Sequence record: OR770614.1
Direction: 5' to 3' (one strand)
DNA length: 64,000 nucleotides
Shown: piece by piece, positions 27,278-43,673 of the stretch
Numbering within the stretch: position 1 is the stretch's first letter
How the letters are laid out: each line of letters starts with the position of its first letter
Made by a program: the position numbers and the translations under genes
The notes under the pieces: generated by a model
Seen by the model: the letters and a program-made list of their open reading frames with translations, nothing else
What the model was told of the DNA's origin: nothing
Database searches by the model: none

Positions 27278-30193
27278 TTAAATTGAACAAGATTCACATT
27301 CAACAATACCTTGAGAGTTTTCATCATGGTCTGGTGAATAAATACGAGTATAATACATAGATTTAATACCTTTACTATAAGCATAGTTACGTAATCTACT
27401 AATATCTCGTGTAGTTGTTTCTTTATCTAAAGAATCTTTTTTCCATTCATAAAGATCTGGATCAAGTTCATTCATTAAATAAATATTCATTGAAATACCT
27501 TGGTCTACATGATATTGAGCTTCTGAATATAAATCAATCATATCTCTCATATCTAATTGATAAGCATTTTTCTTAAAGTATTCAAAGTTTTCAGGATTAA
27601 TACCTGGTGCTGGATAGAAAGTAGTACCTGTTTTACCTTCAACACGTTCTTCAATTAATTCTACAATAGGATGAATAGAAGGTGACACTTCTCTAACATA
27701 ACCAATAGAACCATTAGGTGCTACAGCTAATCTATTTTGATTGTATAAACCATCCATTACAATATTATTCTTCAATTGTTCCCAATCAGAATCAGATGGA
27801 ATAAAGATATCTTCAAATAATTCTTTAACTTTTTCCGTACGTGGTTGAATATTTTTACCAATATAACGTTTATCAAAGTAAGAACCATCAGCATATTCAG
27901 TTTTTTCAAATAAATAGAATGATTCATCTTTTTCTTTAGCAATTTTATTTGATTCAAATAATGTCCAATAGTTTAATAACATGAAATAAATATTAGTGAA
28001 ATCTTTAGATTCTTCTGATCCATATTGAATATGATTTTCAGCTAAATAAGTGTGTAATCCCATTGCACCTAAACCAACTGTATGGAATAAATCATTAGCT
28101 TTTTTAACTGTAGGTACAGCTTCAATATTAGATTTTTCTGCTACTGAATTTAAACTTCTTAACATAGTCCCAACTGATTTACCAAAGTCTTCTGATTTCA
28201 TTAAACCAGGTACAATAGTTGAAGCTAAGTTACATGAAACATCTGTTCCTGTTTTAACGTATTGTTGATTATCGTCAACTAATGAAGGGTATTGTACTTG
28301 TAAAATTTCACTACATAAGTTACTCATTTTAATTGTACCATGACTAATTGGATTAGCTCTATTAGCAGTATCAATATTAATGATATAAGGATAACCAGAC
28401 TCTTGTTGTAATTTACTAATAGTAGTTTCTAAATCACGAGCATACATTTTTTCTTTACCAATACGTTTATCATCTACAAAGATATCATAGTAAGTATTAA
28501 AGTCAATACTATCGAAATCTAAATCATAATATTTTTTAATATCATATGGACTAAATGTATATAATGATTTATTTTCTTTAACTAGTTGATAATATTTATC
28601 TGGAACTGTTAAACCTAATGAAATAGTTTTTAATCTTACTTTTTCATCAGCATTTTCTTTCTTAGTATCTAAGAATTTTATTATATCTTTATGGAAAATG
28701 TTTAAGTAAAGTGCACCTGCACCATTTCTCTGCATTTATGTTAACTGTATTAATGTAATACAGATCAGACTATGTCTTATTATTCTTCTCTAATTCATAA
28801 TGGCATTTTTTACAAACTGTAATAACATTTTCATCATAATGTGCTTCATTAGGATCATTAAATTTTATTATAGGTATAATATGATGTATTTCTAAGTTTT
28901 CTTTAGAATTACAGTTAGTACACATATAATTATCTCTTTTCATGATCTCTTTTCTACGTCTTCTATAAGTTCCACCGTATCTTGTTGGATTTTCTTTAGA
29001 ATAAGTATAATTGGCACATCTATCAGAACAAAAGTATCTCTCTTTATTATTAGCAAAAGTTAAAGAAGGTCTAGAGAATGTTTTATTACAAGTAAAACAT
29101 TTTTCTTTTCTTAATTTTCTTTTAGCTATAACAGAAGCACATTTTTTTGAACAACTGTCAGATTCTTTATGAGATGTTCTAAATTCATTATTACAAATAG
29201 TACAAATTTTTAAATAACGTCTATTTTTACAATTTTGAGAACAATATACTTTAGATTTATATTTTGTTTCAAAATTCTTACTACAAACAGGACATTTTTT
29301 ATTTTCCATTATTATCACCTCAAATCATTATTTGAGAAGAATAATTAATATATTTAGTCGTTGAACAACTTTTTTAAGTTGATGCTAATTGGTTTAATAG
29401 AAACGTCTTAGCAATTAATATTATTTTTATTGAGCCATTAAAATTAACCCAATTGATTTACATATGATAAAGTATCTTCAAATACTTTCATAACTGGAAC
29501 TACTCCTGAAGCAGCACCTTCAACGCCTTTAATTGGATCATTGTCAGCACGTAAATTACTTAAAGATACTCCAATTCCTCCACCACGTTTACTTAATTGA
29601 GCAACGTTAGAAATATTTCTATAGATAGATGATAAAGAATCTTCCATAGTTAATAAGAAACAACTTACCAATTCTCCAGAACGTACTCTACCTGCATTAA
29701 GGAATGTAGGTGTAGCAGGTTGAAAAGTGCCTGTAATAATTTCATTAGCAATATTTCTAGCTAATTCTTCATCCCCATCAGCTAAATATAGAGCAACAAA
29801 TAAAATTCTATCTTCATATAATTCTAATAAAATTTCTCCTGCATCATCTTTCATTGCATACTGTTCATAGAATTTTTTAGCACCTAATAAACGAGTGAAT
29901 CTATGTTTATAAGCCATTAATTCTTTCATTAATCCTTTAATAAATTCAAAATCATAATTTTTGATCATATCTACATCAATATAATCATTATCGACTAAAT
30001 AGTTAATTTTTTCTTTATATGTTTTAAAGTATCTTACATTTTTATTTACATTATCTAAAAAGTATTTTTTAACTGAAGCTAATTCAAATTCTAAATCTAA
30101 ATTGCCATCTTTTAATTGTGAACCTCTTGAATTCAATTCATTGTATGAATAATCTTTAAACTTTTCTGAAGTTAAATCTATTTCTTTTGGCAT
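27278..30193 (-). CDS. nrdE: ribonucleotide reductase class Ib alpha subunit, split by a group I intron (exons 30193-29447 and 28732-27278; 733 aa spliced)
   Basis: PATPTFLNAGR, SCFL, NLCSEI, APNGS and C-terminal CESCSI; splicing restores the conserved NQLG|QR. Confidence 0.95.
28733..29446 (-). mobile_element. group I intron in nrdE (714 nt) with an HNH gene in L8
   Basis: P1 UUGGGU/GCUCAA with U.G; P AAUUGCU, Q AAUUAGCAUC, R GUUCAACGACUA, S AAGACAUAGUCU; ends in AAAUG; an 11-bp P8 (28780-28790 / 29334-29344) flanks the ORF. Confidence 0.92.
28770..29309 (-). CDS. intron-encoded HNH homing endonuclease with three N-terminal Cys4 zinc-finger repeats
   Basis: CxxC...CSxxC x3, then CTNC...LEIHH...N...CKKCH; GAGGTG RBS before MENKK. 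Confidence 0.9.
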   Translation of the reverse strand: MENKKCPVCSKNFETKYKSKVYCSQNCKNRRYLKICTICNNEFRTSHKESDSCSKKCASVIAKRKLRKEKCFTCNKTFSRPSLTFANNKERYFCSDRCANYTYSKENPTRYGGTYRRRRKEIMKRDNYMCTNCNSKENLEIHHIIPIIKFNDPNEAHYDENVITVCKKCHYELEKNNKT

Positions 30194-32957: not shown

Positions 32958-35900
32958 TTATTTGAATAAATCCATAATACGTTTATTATTGTTATCTATT
33001 GGTTTTTGTTGTTGACCAAATATAGAATTACTCATATCATTTCCTTCAATAACACTATTGATACGTTTAATTGAAGCAATATCTTTTCTTCTAGCTTCCT
33101 GTTCTTTTTTCATTCCTTCTGCATTTTCACTGTTAGGTGAGAGTTTAGAACCATATTTAACTTTTACAAATTTATTAATATCCTTTTCATAATAATATGC
33201 ATATAAACAGAATAAATAAGACATCATTAAGTCGTCATGGCCACCTGGTGGATGGTCAATACGTCCTTTAATCATTTGTAACGATTTAATTTCTTGGAAA
33301 AGTGGTTTATTATTAATTAAATGTGGTTTTTCTTCAACAAGCATAGATAATATTTCATTTAACATTATATCACGAGATTTTTTAGTTGTATCAATACCAT
33401 ATCTACGAGTTTCTTTTTTAACTTTTTCAGTTTTACTATATCTAGACATTTCATTAAATAAACTTTTATTTTCTACTTGCTTTTCAGCTACACGAGTTTT
33501 AAGCGTATAGAATAAATTAGATTCTAAACCATCATAAGTTATCATATGATCAATTACTGTTAAACCTGCATAGTTACGTTCAGGTATTAATATAGCGTTA
33601 GGTATATAGAAACCAACCAATTCTTTAATTAATTTTCTGAATGTAGGTCCATTAATTACATTATTTTTAAAAGTCATTACTGGTTCCAAAGTAGCTGGAT
33701 CCACTACAGTAAACGCTGTATTATCTCGTCCTAAACCACCAGACATATCAATACCAATAAGCCAATTTTTCTCTGTAATATTATCCATATATTTAATCAT
33801 ATTTACATAATAAGTTCTACCATCAATATTAAATTCAAGAGTATTATATATTTCTTTATTAGCATACATAGATATTTCAGTCATTTGTTCTTCAGAGAAT
33901 AATGAATCATCAGAACTATAAGCCCATTCCAATAATATCTCACGTTTAACTGCTTCTAAAGAACCAATTTGTCTTTTTTGTTTTTCTAACCAATCTTCAT
34001 CTTTACCTAATTCTTTATATGAATATTCTATATACATGAATTCATTATTTGAATTATCTTCCATGTATTTTTCTAATTTAGAATTTCCTTCTTCTTCACT
34101 ATCAATAAAATAATCATATATTTTTTCATTCCATTGAGCTGCTTCATTCATTTGTTGAAAGAAAAATTGCCCTTGAGATGTGTCGAGAGTTGAAGGGGTT
34201 GTGGTGATAAGGAGTCCATAGGGAGAACCGTTTTCTTTTGCAATTCTAGAAGCTGTACTTATTGCTGGTCATTTATGTTAGCTGCATGGATTATCATGCA
34301 GATCAGACTATATCATAATCTTTTTAAGATTTAATAAATTTAGTCGTTGAACATTATTTAATGATGCTGATTGGTTTTTAAACTTTTCAGCAGTTAATAT
34401 TATTCATCATCTATATTTCTATAAAGATGGAGCCTTTTTACTCATTGCTTCAAACATTACTTGATTATGTGGTATAAACGCCCACTCATCAAGCCAAACC
34501 ATAGGTCATTTACGTTAAACTGCATGGATTATCATGCAGATCAGACTATATCATAATTTTAATAATTTTTTCATAGGGATAATTAATTCTTCATTTATTC
34601 TATTCTGATAAGGGAGACGTATCATATTTATTCCTTTACTTCTTATAAATTTATCTTTTTCATTATCTAATTTTTTTATATCTTCAAGAGTTCTTGTGCG
34701 TTTATTTCTTTTATCATTAATAAAAGTTCCATAACCTTTTATATGTCCTTTTCCATCTACTTCAACTACAGTATTTATTTTTTTAAAATAAAAATCAAAT
34801 CTAAAACTAGATCCTTCAAAAGTAACTTCATTCTCATATTCTATATTATTCTCTTGAAGAAATTCAATAATGGCAATTTCTCCTATACTTTTAGAGCATA
34901 CACTACATCTTTTTCTTTTAAGTATATCATCTGGTCTTGTTTTAAATTTGTGTCCACAATCATTACTCTTCAAATAGATATAATCTTTGCTTCTAGTATA
35001 TTCAGTTAACACATTAAATTTATTATATCCAAATATCATATCTAATTCACCTTGAAACTCTTCTGTTGTCTTTTTAGATAATTCTTGACTATCTAATATG
35101 ATATAATTTTCATCATTTATACATCTATTACAGTTTACTGAATTATACTTCTTTCTTTTATCCATTAGAGTAGAAGGCTTTGCAAAATATCTTATATTTC
35201 CACATTTTCCACAACGGAATCTACACTTTTTATTCATTCCATTGAATCCTTCAATATAAGTATAATTAAATCCGAACTTATCTTTTAATTCTATTAAAAA
35301 AGTTTCTTTACCTTTAGAATTCTTGGGTTTTTCTGAATATCTACAATCTTTTCTATTACAGAATTTTCTCTTTAATCTTAATTTTTCAGTAGGTAAGAAA
35401 AAATCTCTATCACATATATTACAATGACATTTAATTGGTTCTTTAGAATTTTTATACTCTCCCAGTATTTCAAATTTATCTCCATTAATATCTTTTATTT
35501 CTTTAAAAGTTTTATTTCTCTGTTCTATGAATTTTTCTTTACTTTTAACACCTTTAGGCATTTTATCCCTCCGTTATCGTACTGATAAAAGAATGTTAAC
35601 AGTAAAAATTATTAAAATTGATTTTATTTAGTCGTTGAACACTAATTAAAGTGATGCTGATTAACTTCATTATTAGTCTTCCAGCAATTAAAAATCTTTA
35701 TGCACTGCATCTACATACGGTGCTACCTCTTCCTGCTTTGTTTGCCGTAATACATTGTATGATATTCATACACACTAGACTATATCTTATAATATTAATT
35801 ATCTCTATATTTAGTCGTTGAACAATCAATTTGATTGATGCTGATTGGTTTAGTATCTTTTTCAGCAGTTAATAGAGTTTAATGAGAGCACGTATTTTAC

Positions 35901-36531
35901 TCTCAGCATTTGTTGGAGGTGATACTGTTTTTATTGTGTTGTTATTACTTGCTAAAGAAAATTCATTAATTTTGTCTCTATCATTTTTATCACCAAAGTT
36001 AGCTAATACATAATCCGGTAAACATTTCTCTTTGAATAGATTTTTTAATCGTTTAAGGTTTTCAGTAGTGTCCGAGTACGATTTATGTGTAAATAACATT
36101 GTATAGTTATTACCTACCAATAACATAATCCATGAATAATAACATACTGCAGAATATGTTTTATAGTGCTGACGAGGTAACATTATTGCAGTATCTAAAT
36201 TATGCAACATACAAAAAGTCATAGCTAAATTACCTCTATGAAGTTCATACATTACTTTTCCACCCGGAACCGGAACTCTGATAACTTCTCTTAAATAAAA
36301 CCATATATTAAGTTTAGCTTCCCTAATAACACGTGTTTTCATTTCATTATCTAGATCTTCATCCCAAGGATCAACACCAATTAATTTCTTATCATATAGA
36401 GTTAATGGCAATCCATAATTTTGTATATTATTATCTTTAAGTTCTTTAGCAACTTTTAAAAAGCTTACATTATTAGTTTTATAATCGTAATAAATTTTTT
36501 TCTTTAATTTTGTTATAGCCATAGTCTTCAT
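32958..36531 (-). CDS. terL: terminase large subunit in four exons (36531-35899; 35745-35717; 34506-~34441; ~34269-32958; ~679 aa)
   Basis: Walker A-like LPRQHYKT, GRG motif in exon 2, Walker B VWLDE in exon 3, coupling motif ITTTP, nuclease IGIDMSGG and HDDLMM. Confidence 0.9.
34270..34439 (-). mobile_element. ORF-less group I mini-intron 3 of terL (~170 nt)
   Basis: P AACUGCUGAAA, Q AAUCAGCAUC, R GUUCAACGACUA, S AUGAUAUAGUCU, td-like P9 CUGCAUG...CAUGCAG, ends in AAAUG; the exact junction is ambiguous by 1 nt. Confidence 0.88.
34507..35716 (-). mobile_element. group I intron 2 of terL (1210 nt) with an endonuclease gene in L8
   Basis: P/Q/R elements at 35625-35685, S/P9 at 34507-34557; a perfect 16-bp P8 (35604-35619 / 34555-34570) flanks the ORF. 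Confidence 0.92.
34551..35561 (-). CDS. intron-encoded homing endonuclease: repeated zinc ribbons plus a C-terminal PD-(D/E)xK / Vsr-like domain
   Basis: Three CxxC zinc-ribbon units; SIGE...FRFDFY...VEVDGKGH; GGAGG RBS; the stop codon overlaps the intron S element. Confidence 0.85.
   Translation of the reverse strand: MPKGVKSKEKFIEQRNKTFKEIKDINGDKFEILGEYKNSKEPIKCHCNICDRDFFLPTEKLRLKRKFCNRKDCRYSEKPKNSKGKETFLIELKDKFGFNYTYIEGFNGMNKKCRFRCGKCGNIRYFAKPSTLMDKRKKYNSVNCNRCINDENYIILDSQELSKKTTEEFQGELDMIFGYNKFNVLTEYTRSKDYIYLKSNDCGHKFKTRPDDILKRKRCSVCSKSIGEIAIIEFLQENNIEYENEVTFEGSSFRFDFYFKKINTVVEVDGKGHIKGYGTFINDKRNKRTRTLEDIKKLDNEKDKFIRSKGINMIRLPYQNRINEELIIPMKKLLKL
35746..35898 (-). mobile_element. ORF-less group I mini-intron 1 of terL (153 nt)
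   Basis: P1 UGAGAGU/GCUCUCA; P, Q, R and S (AAGAUAUAGUCU) elements; terminal G; removal joins NAES to ANKAGRG in frame. Confidence 0.92.
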
Positions 36532-38920: not shown

Positions 38921-40516
38921 TTAACGAGCGTATACTGAACCGTTGTTGTTTTTGATTGTAATACGACCAATGATCGGAACAAATGATTCAACTGTATATC
39001 TACGAGTCATCATCATGTTAGGAACATTAGGGTTACGAGTATTCAAGTATCCTCCACCATTTACAACGTTGAATGTGTAAGGGTAGAACATGAATGTTTT
39101 ATAGTTGTCTTGTTGAGGAATTGCAATAATAGTCAATTCACCTTGACGAACTAAGTCAGAACCGATAATACGGTAGTTAGCAGTACCTGAAGCAGCACCT
39201 AATGAATAGTTAATTTTGATTCCGTTAGAGTAAGAATCTTCAGTACCACCATTAAATGTCCAAGAAACGTTAGGGATTAAACGAACGTCAACTGGGTTAC
39301 CTACGATAACAAATTGTACATCGTAAAGTTTGTAATCATTTTTCATTGATTGTGTAGTATGGTCAATTACTTCACGTAGACCTTCTAACCAATCTTTAGG
39401 GTGAGCACTGTAATCACTATGTGGATAAACATCGAAGCTGAAGTGATATTTAGCATCAGTTTCTTCGTATTCGTGATCTAAGAATTCAATGATATCTAAG
39501 TCAACTTTTTGACTAGATAATTGAGACATTGTTTCAGATAAACGAGCAACTCCATCGATATCATAAGTAGCTTTCATATCTTGAATTACTTCAAGAGGTA
39601 CTGTAGCCTCGATGTGTTGAGCTGTATCGATAGTGATATCTTTACGATCTAATCCAAGCTCAATGTTAGTAGCTGAAGTATGTTGTTCAGAAGCTACATA
39701 ACCTTTAATTTTAATTGCTTCTAATTTACCAGAAGTTGAAGCTAAAGCTAAAGTACCGTTAGAAACATCAACTTTACCTAATACTGTATCAACAGCAACT
39801 TCACCGTCACCATTTGTAGGGTATTTAACTTCTGCCATTAGAGAGTCATTTTCCATTTTAATAACTTGAGAACCTAATTCAACAAATCCTTTTTCGTTTG
39901 TACGTACATCAAAAGAATCGCTCCATTTAGCTTCTACAACTTTGAATTTACGGTCAACACGATCAATGCCTTTACGAACTTCTTTACCTTCTTTTAAGCC
40001 ATCGAATAAATCGTAAGCTTCAACTTTACCACCAGAAATTGTAACTTCTTCTTTAAGAGGAACTAATCCTACTAAAGTTTCAGGTGTGTTATTAATTGAT
40101 TCAGGTAATGCATGTTTGTTTCCATCAGCATCTACAACGTAAGGTGTTAAGATTGGCACTGTGAATTGTGGTTTATTAGCAACTTGAGTTGGTAAAGCTT
40201 CAGTTAAAGCTAAACGAGCCCAAAGTTTAACTAAGATAGGCATAGATAATGAAGCATAAGGTTGGATAGGTCCCATTGAAGACTCTAATAAGATTTCTTC
40301 ACGAGTATTATCTAACATACTTTCTAAAGAAAGCTGCTCCTCTTCATCAAAACCTTCTAATAATTGATCTTTATAACTTTCAAATACTACGTCATCAGTA
40401 GCAATTGAAGCGAAGTCATTACCAACTGTACTTAATTTGTACTGTTCGTTGATATTTTGTTCGATATCCTCTAAGAGTTTAGAGAATTCATCTTTAATTC
40501 TATTTGCACTCAACAT
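38921..40516 (-). CDS. major capsid protein precursor
   Basis: 531 aa with strong codon bias; acidic N-terminal propeptide ending in LLE-SS; between protease/scaffold genes and terL; late motif at 40577-40588. Confidence 0.75.
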   Translation of the reverse strand: MLSANRIKDEFSKLLEDIEQNINEQYKLSTVGNDFASIATDDVVFESYKDQLLEGFDEEEQLSLESMLDNTREEILLESSMGPIQPYASLSMPILVKLWARLALTEALPTQVANKPQFTVPILTPYVVDADGNKHALPESINNTPETLVGLVPLKEEVTISGGKVEAYDLFDGLKEGKEVRKGIDRVDRKFKVVEAKWSDSFDVRTNEKGFVELGSQVIKMENDSLMAEVKYPTNGDGEVAVDTVLGKVDVSNGTLALASTSGKLEAIKIKGYVASEQHTSATNIELGLDRKDITIDTAQHIEATVPLEVIQDMKATYDIDGVARLSETMSQLSSQKVDLDIIEFLDHEYEETDAKYHFSFDVYPHSDYSAHPKDWLEGLREVIDHTTQSMKNDYKLYDVQFVIVGNPVDVRLIPNVSWTFNGGTEDSYSNGIKINYSLGAASGTANYRIIGSDLVRQGELTIIAIPQQDNYKTFMFYPYTFNVVNGGGYLNTRNPNVPNMMMTRRYTVESFVPIIGRITIKNNNGSVYAR

Positions 40517-42486: not shown

Positions 42487-43673
42487 ATGTCTAAAGATAT
42501 TAAAGCTTACATTATTAATGAATCTAATACAACTTCTCAACCAGAAGTAGTTCAAGATAATAACAAATCAGTTAGATTCATTGCTGAATTACAAGAAGCT
42601 GATAGACAAAACCGTAATGGTCGTGTTTATCGTAAAGATGTTATACAAAGTGGATTAGATAGTCCAGTAGTACAAGAAAAATTAGCAAGAAGAACTTTTT
42701 ATGGTGAGTTTTAGGTTAAAATGGCTCACGTTAAATTATATTAATTGCTGAAATCTTATTTAAAGTAATCAGCATCAACTTAATACAAGTTGTTCAACGA
42801 CTAAATATATAACTTAATTTAATTAAGAAGATATAGTCTAATCTATATAAAATATAAATATAGATAATATAAGCAGGTCATCCTTTAAGTGATGAACCTA
42901 AACGTCAAATGTATATTGATCAACGTAATATTTCTCATATTATCACTAGAACTTGGTGGAATGGTAATAAATTAATGGGAGAAGTAGAAACAGCTCAAAC
43001 AGCAGCTGGTAAAGATATGAAAGGTTTAATTGGACAAAAGTCTGATGTATCCTTCTCAATGCGTGGTTTTAGTAAAATAGAAAGAAAACCTAATGGTGAA
43101 GTAGAAGTTACTAAACCTTTAAGATTAATCTGTTACGATAAATAACTCTGTCGCTTCTTAAAGCAATTTAAGTCGAATAATATTATTAATTGCTGAAAAG
43201 AATTCATTAAATTAATCAGCATCCTCAAAAAGAGGTTCAACGACTAAATATAATATACTTAATTTATTAAGTAATGATATAGTCTAGTCTATATGAAATT
43301 CATATAGTTAATATAAACGTGGGTAGTAATTCCATCACATCAAGATTCTTATATCCAAAATATAATTTCAGAGAATCATAATAATTACAATACTAGTGAT
43401 TTACAAATGGTTAATGAATCAATTGATATGTTTTCTAACGGTAAAGTTACAGAATTTTCTCCTAGAGAAGTTTTAACTTATATTAAAGAAAATTCAGACA
43501 ATATCAAATATATCGCTGAAGATATGGGATTTGATAAAGCTGATGAATCTAATATCATTTACGATAAAGGATCTCAATTAGCTTCAATTAAAGAAAGTAA
43601 TAAAACTATTAAAGTTTTCTTAGAAGAATCTGTTCTTAATGGACTTGATGATTTCTATAGAAACTTTAAATAA
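42487..43673 (+). CDS. prohead core protease (T4 gp21-like) in three exons (42487-42709; 42874-43139; 43320-43673; 280 aa)
   Basis: LQEAD..NRNGRVY, spliced GE-SGHP, FSMRG and YD-WVVIPSH; the exon lengths sum to a multiple of 3. Confidence 0.9.
42710..42873 (+). mobile_element. ORF-less group I mini-intron 1 of the prohead protease (164 nt)
   Basis: P1 GUGAGU/GCUCAC; AAUUGCUGAAA, AAUCAGCAUC, GUUCAACGACUA, AAGAUAUAGUCU; terminal G. Confidence 0.92.
43140..43319 (+). mobile_element. ORF-less group I mini-intron 2 of the prohead protease (180 nt)
   Basis: P1 CGAU/GUCG; the same P/Q/R/S elements; terminal G before the conserved Trp codon. Confidence 0.92.

Follow-up and report, generated by a model that had tools for sequence, protein, structure and literature searches.

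Three ORFs of a staphylococcal jumbo phage appear to form one prohead protease gene split by two group I mini-introns

The DNA analysed here (the window, 64,000 nt in length) corresponds to bases 1-64000 of Staphylococcus phage vB_StaM_PB50, a Staphylococcus jumbo phage with a record of 273.7 kb (OR770614.1), and a 5-kb stretch around the locus of interest is 100% identical to that record with identical coordinates. Three short ORFs at this locus, 2 kb from the major head protein gene (38921-40516), raise the question of whether they are separate genes or the pieces of a single one. They are arranged as follows:

42487-42714, + strand, ORF 1
42909-43145, + strand, ORF 2
43407-43673, + strand, ORF 3

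A preliminary description of the window had mentioned three unrelated short ORFs, which are indeed present on the + strand at these positions, and had read them as one gene for a 280-aa prohead protease that would typically be mis-annotated as separate hypothetical genes. The existing records agree with this last expectation, as the PB50 pieces are mislabelled ('terminase large subunit', 'homing endonuclease', and 'prohead core scaffold and protease') and the corresponding pieces in the AH12, LY01, and S6 records are called hypothetical; the GenBank records of Machias, Madawaska, and MarsHill annotate the protease gene as a join. The nearest relatives of the 5-kb PB50 stretch are the S. aureus jumbo phages Machias (97%) and AH12 (96%), while Madawaska, MarsHill, S6, DC4, PALS_2, SA1, and LY01 follow at 82-85%. 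Our reading, to which we would assign a probability of about 0.94, is that 42487-43673 constitutes one prohead serine protease gene split by two ORF-less group I introns of one family. Its layout is as follows:

42487..42709, + strand, exon 1, codons 1-74 and the first base of the Ser75 codon, last base U42709
42710..42873, + strand, intron 1, 164 nt, last base G42873
42874..43139, + strand, exon 2, last two bases of the Ser75 codon and codons 76-163, last base U43139
43140..43319, + strand, intron 2, 180 nt, preceded by U43139, last base G43319
43320..43673, + strand, exon 3, codons 164-280 and the stop, starting with WVVIPSH and running into a C-terminal scaffold-like part

The three exons (223 + 266 + 354 = 843 nt) supply 280 codons plus a stop within a gene stretch of 1187 bp. 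GC content is 20-31%, and both introns are very AT-rich (20-23% GC). Without splicing, the frame is stopped by TAG at 42712-42714 and by TAA at 43143, and each frame of each intron contains 5-9 stops. The protease gene of SA1 is uninterrupted and consists of a single 843-nt CDS; DC4 has the same 843-nt gene, and mass spectrometry found its product in virions (PMC10638138). A tblastn search of the window with the SA1 protein yielded three abutting matches (residues 1-74, 75-163, and 164-280), so that this 280-aa ortholog covers the three PB50 pieces with nothing lost or duplicated, in keeping with the claim of a single 280-aa gene. The exon peptides are 97% (exon 1), 94% (exon 2), and 91% (exon 3) identical to SA1, and a nucleotide alignment of PB50 and SA1 placed both insertions with zero SA1 bases lost. 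Judged on the SA1 ortholog, excision at 42709/42874 and 43139/43320 restores the reading frame, and the introns close with G42873 and G43319 at the sole limits that both keep the frame and match the uninterrupted ortholog. The insert limits put forward in the preliminary description are thus borne out by the frame, by the SA1 alignment, and by joints in RNA-library contigs described below. The junction motifs it predicted were recovered as well, with the SA1 protein reading GESGHP and CYDWVVIPSH across the two PB50 junctions. Over all three pieces, the PB50 exons differ from SA1 by 44 silent and 16 amino-acid-changing codons (23 and 10, respectively, in exon 3), which indicates that all three are under purifying selection.

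Profile searches of the individual pieces point to a head maturation protease. The exon 1 peptide matched phrog_31489 'head maturation protease' (E 9.7e-13) together with the identically labelled phrog_3014 and phrog_207, and the exon 2 peptide matched phrog_207 (E 3.6e-10) and phrog_3014; the two peptides match phrog_207/phrog_3014 collinearly, with exon 2 at the next profile positions. Exon 2 alone scored 18.7 bits against Peptidase_S77 (PF03420; E 0.0013, cut-off 27), and the exon 3 peptide alone gave no family match in the Pfam and PHROGs profile searches. The SA1 ortholog scored 35.8 bits against PF03420 Peptidase_S77 (cut-off 27, E 7.5e-9), reached E 1e-24 against phrog_207/3014, and matched PDB 5JBL (T4 gp21) with E 0.021. 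The 5JBL chain has Ala at both positions of the catalytic His and Ser, and the catalytic-residue alignment was made with wild-type T4 gp21 from the T4 record. T4 gp21 His85 aligns with His77 of GHP (GESGHP) in the PB50/SA1 protease, Ser140 with Ser136 of SFSMRG, and Asp168 with Asp163 of CYD. The H85A/S140A protein is a catalytically dead gp21 (PMC12991175), and the gp21 triad has been described as His/Ser/Asp, with the triad residue numbers not given (PMC5694885); by its place in the alignment, T4 Asp168, and hence PB50 Asp163, is probably the triad Asp. The proposed kinship with T4 gp21 and Peptidase S77 is therefore upheld, both by the score of the SA1 ortholog above the PF03420 cut-off and by the alignment of the GHP His with the catalytic His85.

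Exon 2 accordingly holds His77, Ser136, and, as its final codon, the probable catalytic Asp163. Because gp21 His85 aligns with the GHP His, intron 1 can be said to end 5 nt before the codon for catalytic His77, and because gp21 Asp168 aligns with the CYD Asp, intron 2 would lie directly after the probable catalytic Asp163 codon. The conserved motif that had been noted at the second junction is present, although the position is better read as directly after the probable catalytic Asp. Like T4 gp21 (PF03420, PDB 5JBL), the PB50 protease has a catalytic His and Ser with a conserved Asp in the GVD/CYD position, and both genes lie in a head-gene neighbourhood with an adjoining major head protein gene. 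The two proteins share only ~26% identity, however, and unlike T4 gp21 the PB50 protease has a C-terminal extension of ~100 aa without a family match, while the T4 gp21 gene is without introns.

As to the inserts themselves, Rfam at its gathering threshold returned no match in the whole 64,000-nt window. In a permissive search against RF00028, both introns aligned over the full model length, intron 1 with 30.9 bits (E 7e-6) and intron 2 with 37.3 bits (E 8.5e-8), where the E-values refer to the local stretch and the threshold of 50 bits is one of detection, not a structural criterion. The sub-threshold scores are attributable to missing peripheral parts and long loops. The helices of intron 1 (+ strand) were modelled as follows:

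42704-42710/42723-42729, P1, with U42709·G42724 at the 5' splice site
42736-41/42807-12, P3
42746-51/42769-74, P4
42755-57/42763-65, P5
42776-81/42787-92, P6
42799-803/42834-38, P7
42813-18/42822-27, P8
42841-48/42858-65, P9

Those of intron 2 (+ strand) were modelled as:

43136-40/43149-53, P1, with U43139·G43150 at the 5' splice site
43157-62/43167-72, P2 hairpin with a GCAA tetraloop
43180-86/43250-56, P3
43191-96/43216-21, P4
43201-04/43210-13, P5
43223-26/43232-35, P6
43242-46/43280-84, P7
43257-62/43267-72, P8
43289-96/43300-07, P9

P1 of intron 2 is short, with four exon pairs and one intron pair (C43136-G43153, G43137-C43152, A43138-U43151, U43139·G43150, and A43140-U43149). Both introns have the invariant P7 and J8/7 segments, P3 is pseudoknotted with P7 in each, and the minimum free energy folds contain P1 with its U·G pair and P4-P9, as well as P2 in intron 2; the fold z-scores are modest (-2.6 and -2.0). 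The two introns align with each other, and an 18-nt core motif common to both occurs in six copies in the window versus 0.16 expected by chance. A covariance model of our own (R1), built from 11 mini-introns of the protease gene and terL, gave scores of 136.3 bits for intron 1 and 124.7 bits for intron 2, and in the window it found six introns plus the 3' halves of two introns that bear endonuclease genes. Covariation was assessed on 46 matches, 40 of them distinct, from PB50, Machias, Madawaska, MarsHill, and LY01. Among the 40 distinct members, 96.6% of cells form standard pairs, as opposed to 74.6% when shuffled and 27-46% when the partners were slid; the alignment was fitted to the model and so favours the modelled structure, although the margin is still very large. 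Compensatory changes on both sides were found in 26 of the 40 pairs, with P3, P5, P6, P8, and P9 covarying richly, while P7 is invariant across the 40 distinct members and is therefore uninformative on covariation. With the P1 U·G pair, the terminal G, and a covarying P3-P9 core in both, the two inserts are, on this modelled structure, group I introns of the self-splicing type, as had been claimed for them.

The relatives carry a range of alleles at this gene, which were mapped onto the SA1 CDS:

after nt 219, 1.1-kb intron with a LAGLIDADG gene, in MarsHill and S6
after nt 223, mini-intron 1, in PB50, Machias, AH12, LY01, and Madawaska
after nt 483, mini-intron, in Machias, AH12, and LY01
after nt 489, mini-intron 2, in PB50, Madawaska, and LY01
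after nt 494, mini-intron, in Machias and AH12
no insertion, uninterrupted protease gene, in SA1 and DC4

The five insertion sites form one cluster of 4 nt at the His codon and another of 11 nt at the Asp codon. By lying next to these codons, PB50 introns 1 and 2 show the preference that is usual in mobile introns, namely for sequence encoding a highly conserved active site. The intron guide sequences differ among the relatives, each matching its own insertion site. Madawaska has mini-introns at exactly the two PB50 sites. Machias, which is 97% identical to PB50, shares the intron 1 site, but at the second site PB50 differs from Machias, AH12, and LY01, each of which has a pair of introns there, back to back around the Asp codon (Machias L002:2625-2973, AH12 L007, and LY01 L008:2459-2829) and leaving a micro-exon of 11 nt in Machias and AH12 and of 6 nt in LY01 (L008:2640-2645). 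The GenBank join of Machias lists three exons, whereas the alignment requires four. The 1.1-kb group I intron of MarsHill (L004:1719-2886) and S6 (L005) lies 4 nt upstream of the mini-intron 1 site and differs from the mini-introns, and alignment to the SA1 CDS revealed no intron at the second protease site in either phage. Intron-free, one-, two-, and three-intron alleles thus form a clean natural series among sequenced close relatives, which recommends the locus for work on the spread of ORF-less group I introns and on the lower size limit of a functional group I ribozyme.

Once transcribed, each PB50 intron would be expected to fold into a minimal group I core consisting of P1, the P3/P7 pseudoknot, P4-P6, P8, and P9. 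A free guanosine would presumably attack after U42709 or U43139, and the freed exon end would then attack after the terminal G (42873 or 43319), such that the exons would be joined to the 843-nt reading frame with GE-S-GHP and CYD-WVVIPSH across the joints. We infer that the RNA splices in PB50-infected cells, presumably without a protein helper. For joined forms, a 1301-letter stretch was compared with contigs of three RNA-library runs (X5, X11, and X12) and one DNA run (X1). A 693-nt tick-metatranscriptome contig from X5, 95-99% alike, joins 42709/42874 and 43139/43320, which are exact skips of 164 and 180 nt, and a 1624-nt contig from the transcriptome run X11, 90-95% alike, joins 43139/43320 with an exact 180-nt skip. 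At the first site, the X11 contig has 42708 joined to 42876 with AGT between them, a different Ser codon; as AGT stands in place of 42709-42875, X11 has no intron there. The third RNA run (X12) contained no contig matching the protease stretch, and in the DNA metagenome (X1) contigs cross the exon/intron borders, with no exon-exon joints seen among them. Since intron-less SA1 and DC4 exist, the joined contigs demonstrate a natural joined sequence rather than splicing of the PB50 transcript, and those of X5 and X11 may represent spliced RNA or may derive, as transcripts or as DNA, from relatives that lack the introns (SA1 and DC4 are examples).

Other explanations of the locus have to be set against this reading. 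The three separate small proteins annotated in the PB50 record would suit a dead, fragmented pseudogene broken by non-splicing repeats, with the protease function supplied by another protein. We consider this highly improbable, as the three pieces are in register with the above-mentioned excess of silent over replacement differences from SA1, the group I core of the inserts covaries and their splice-site features are correct, five phages that are propagated (PB50, Machias, AH12, LY01, and Madawaska) retain the same arrangement, and T4-type assembly cannot do without the prohead protease (PMC5694885). It is scarcely conceivable that the interruptions are instead crossed by ribosomal bypassing or removed as inteins, since the stops in every frame of the inserts, taken with an RNA architecture in place of a coding signal, effectively refute it. 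Nothing specific argues for bypassing beyond its existence in phage T4 gene 60, and the gap there is 50 nt, less than a third of the 164-180 nt of the present inserts. For inteins, there is the precedent of a gyrase A intein in the staphylococcal jumbo-phage clade, which is mentioned in the accessible part of Korn et al. (bioRxiv 10.1101/2020.12.14.422802; J Virol 2021).

A more serious alternative, albeit one that we still regard as unlikely, accepts the inserts as genuine group I derivatives and holds that they are too reduced for self-splicing, such that a phage or host maturase, an RNA chaperone, or a trans-acting family member would be needed. Their very small size is consistent with this (164 and 180 nt for the PB50 pair, with a family minimum of about 146 nt), as are the absence of peripheral domains, a P5 of only 3-4 bp, the short P1 of intron 2, the lack of a P8 hairpin in several family members, and the scores of both introns below the Rfam threshold. 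On the other hand, neither PB50 intron lacks a core helix or the invariant P7 and J8/7, P2-bearing members have the GNRA loops typical of self-folding small introns, and a comparably minimal core suffices for self-splicing in the 205-nt Azoarcus pre-tRNA-Ile intron, which is frequently named as the smallest natural group I intron that self-splices. Like the PB50 introns, the Azoarcus intron has a minimal core without peripheral domains and short hairpins capped by GNRA tetraloops. The PB50 introns, whose self-splicing is predicted, are 25-41 nt shorter and, unlike the Azoarcus intron, very AT-rich and located in protein-coding phage genes, and intron 1 is without P2. It is possible, and we advance it only tentatively, that the PB50 mini-introns are among the smallest natural self-splicing group I introns and belong to an ORF-less family that has multiplied to 23-30 copies per jumbo-phage genome and has repeatedly and independently invaded two spots of 4-11 nt at the catalytic His and Asp codons of the head protease, with the micro-exons of the sister phages as a result. 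If splicing without protein were true of them, the known minimal size and core requirements of a group I ribozyme would be lowered, and a spread without an endonuclease of their own would need explaining, for example through trans-acting endonucleases or reverse splicing.

In comparison with the classical phage group I introns (T4 td/nrdB/nrdD, Staphylococcus phage Twort, and Bacillus SPO1/SP82 and AR9), the split protease gene of PB50 is familiar in several respects, as those introns are likewise self-splicing-type, interrupt essential genes at conserved active-site coding sequence, and vary in their presence among close relatives. Some members of the PB50 family, such as the HNH-bearing nrdE intron and terL intron B, also resemble them in harbouring homing endonuclease genes. 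The classical introns differ in being much longer and in residing in DNA-metabolism genes, whereas the PB50 target is a head-morphogenesis protease, and the PB50 protease introns are ORF-less and belong to a family present at 23-30 copies per genome. The preliminary description had called the head protease an unusual target for group I introns. Group I introns in this gene are upheld, but the target is not new: such a split has been published for sister phages, and joins are already annotated in Machias, Madawaska, and MarsHill. According to the accessible part of Korn et al., the intron-disrupted genes of MarsHill, Madawaska, and Machias are those for the prohead scaffold/protease, RNA polymerase subunits, DNA polymerase, large terminase, and gyrase B, with the exons predicted by protein alignment only, to AR9 (YP_009283018 for the protease joins); intron class, structure, and size are not given in that part. 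The split protease gene of PB50 is therefore a re-annotation of a published feature of the clade. Less well documented, and not described in the accessible portions of the literature examined, are the compactness of the introns, the members that lack P8, the clustering of sites at catalytic codons, and the micro-exons. The 23-30 copies per genome (none in SA1) are also less well documented. The corrected annotation is a practical gain, as a gene essential for virion maturation is split up into mislabelled fragments in the PB50, AH12, LY01, and S6 records and mini-introns are missed by standard Rfam screening, both of which affect how genes are counted, how genomes are compared, and how candidate therapeutic phages of staphylococci are annotated for safety.

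The mini-intron family extends well beyond the protease gene. The whole records OR770614.1, MW349128.1, MW248466.1, and MW218148.1 were compared for their intron load, which proved to vary sharply between close relatives: R1 matched PB50 (OR770614.1) 23 times and Machias 30 times, MarsHill had 10 matches, and SA1 had none. The R1 matches are 134-174 nt long, and family introns measured by their boundaries are 146-184 nt, the longest (184 nt) being those at the second site of Madawaska and LY01. In DC4, Rfam was reported to find no introns, and the protease and terL genes are single ORFs (PMC10638138). A retron-like reverse transcriptase (PF00078) was considered as a possible link to intron load through spread by reverse splicing; it is present in all five of the phages checked, intron-free SA1 included, and thus shows no correlation with intron load. 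In the window, the large terminase gene (terL) on the - strand (34271-36522) was observed to have three introns of the same family:

35898-35753, - strand, terL intron A, only 146 nt
35752-35717, - strand, 36-nt exon after intron A
35716 to about 34507, - strand, terL intron B, carrying an annotated 'homing endonuclease' at 35561-34551
about 34430-34271, - strand, terL intron C

For intron C, canonical U|...G| sites in frame could not be placed by eye. According to Korn et al., terL of MarsHill could not be reconstructed. The ribonucleotide reductase alpha-subunit gene (nrdE), also on the - strand, is split at 28734-29449 by a further family member and is annotated as two CDS (27278-28735 and 29444-30193); its intron contains the following gene in its P8 region:

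28770-29309, - strand, HNH gene of the nrdE intron

P8 is normally counted in the group I core, and it is kept in PB50 intron 1. It is absent from the intron 1 copies of Machias, Madawaska, and LY01 (L002:2211-2364, L003:1923-2077, and L008:2045-2198, respectively), and further members without P8 occur at 226139-226286 and 113172-113321 of the MarsHill record and at 254786-254932 of the PB50 record. These members are 147-155 nt long and have just a 5-8-nt stub between P3' and J8/7. As a candidate substitute for P8, the first six intron bases pair with the stub in the intron 1 copies of Machias, Madawaska, and LY01, but the other P8-less members are without such a complement and the pairing is probably coincidental; a conserved substitute pairing was not found among the P8-less members. 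The P8-less introns occupy essential genes of propagated phages. Outside the cultivated phages, a core-motif scan of IMG/VR matched at least 119 loci, and R1, applied to 80 of these (L041-L120), produced 56 full-length matches of 149-206 nt, mostly on contigs of 200-400 kb, from which it appears that compact introns are widespread in huge phages. The uncultivated viral contigs of IMG/VR often have several mini-intron matches per locus, and contigs of giant-virus MAGs carry the core motif as well.
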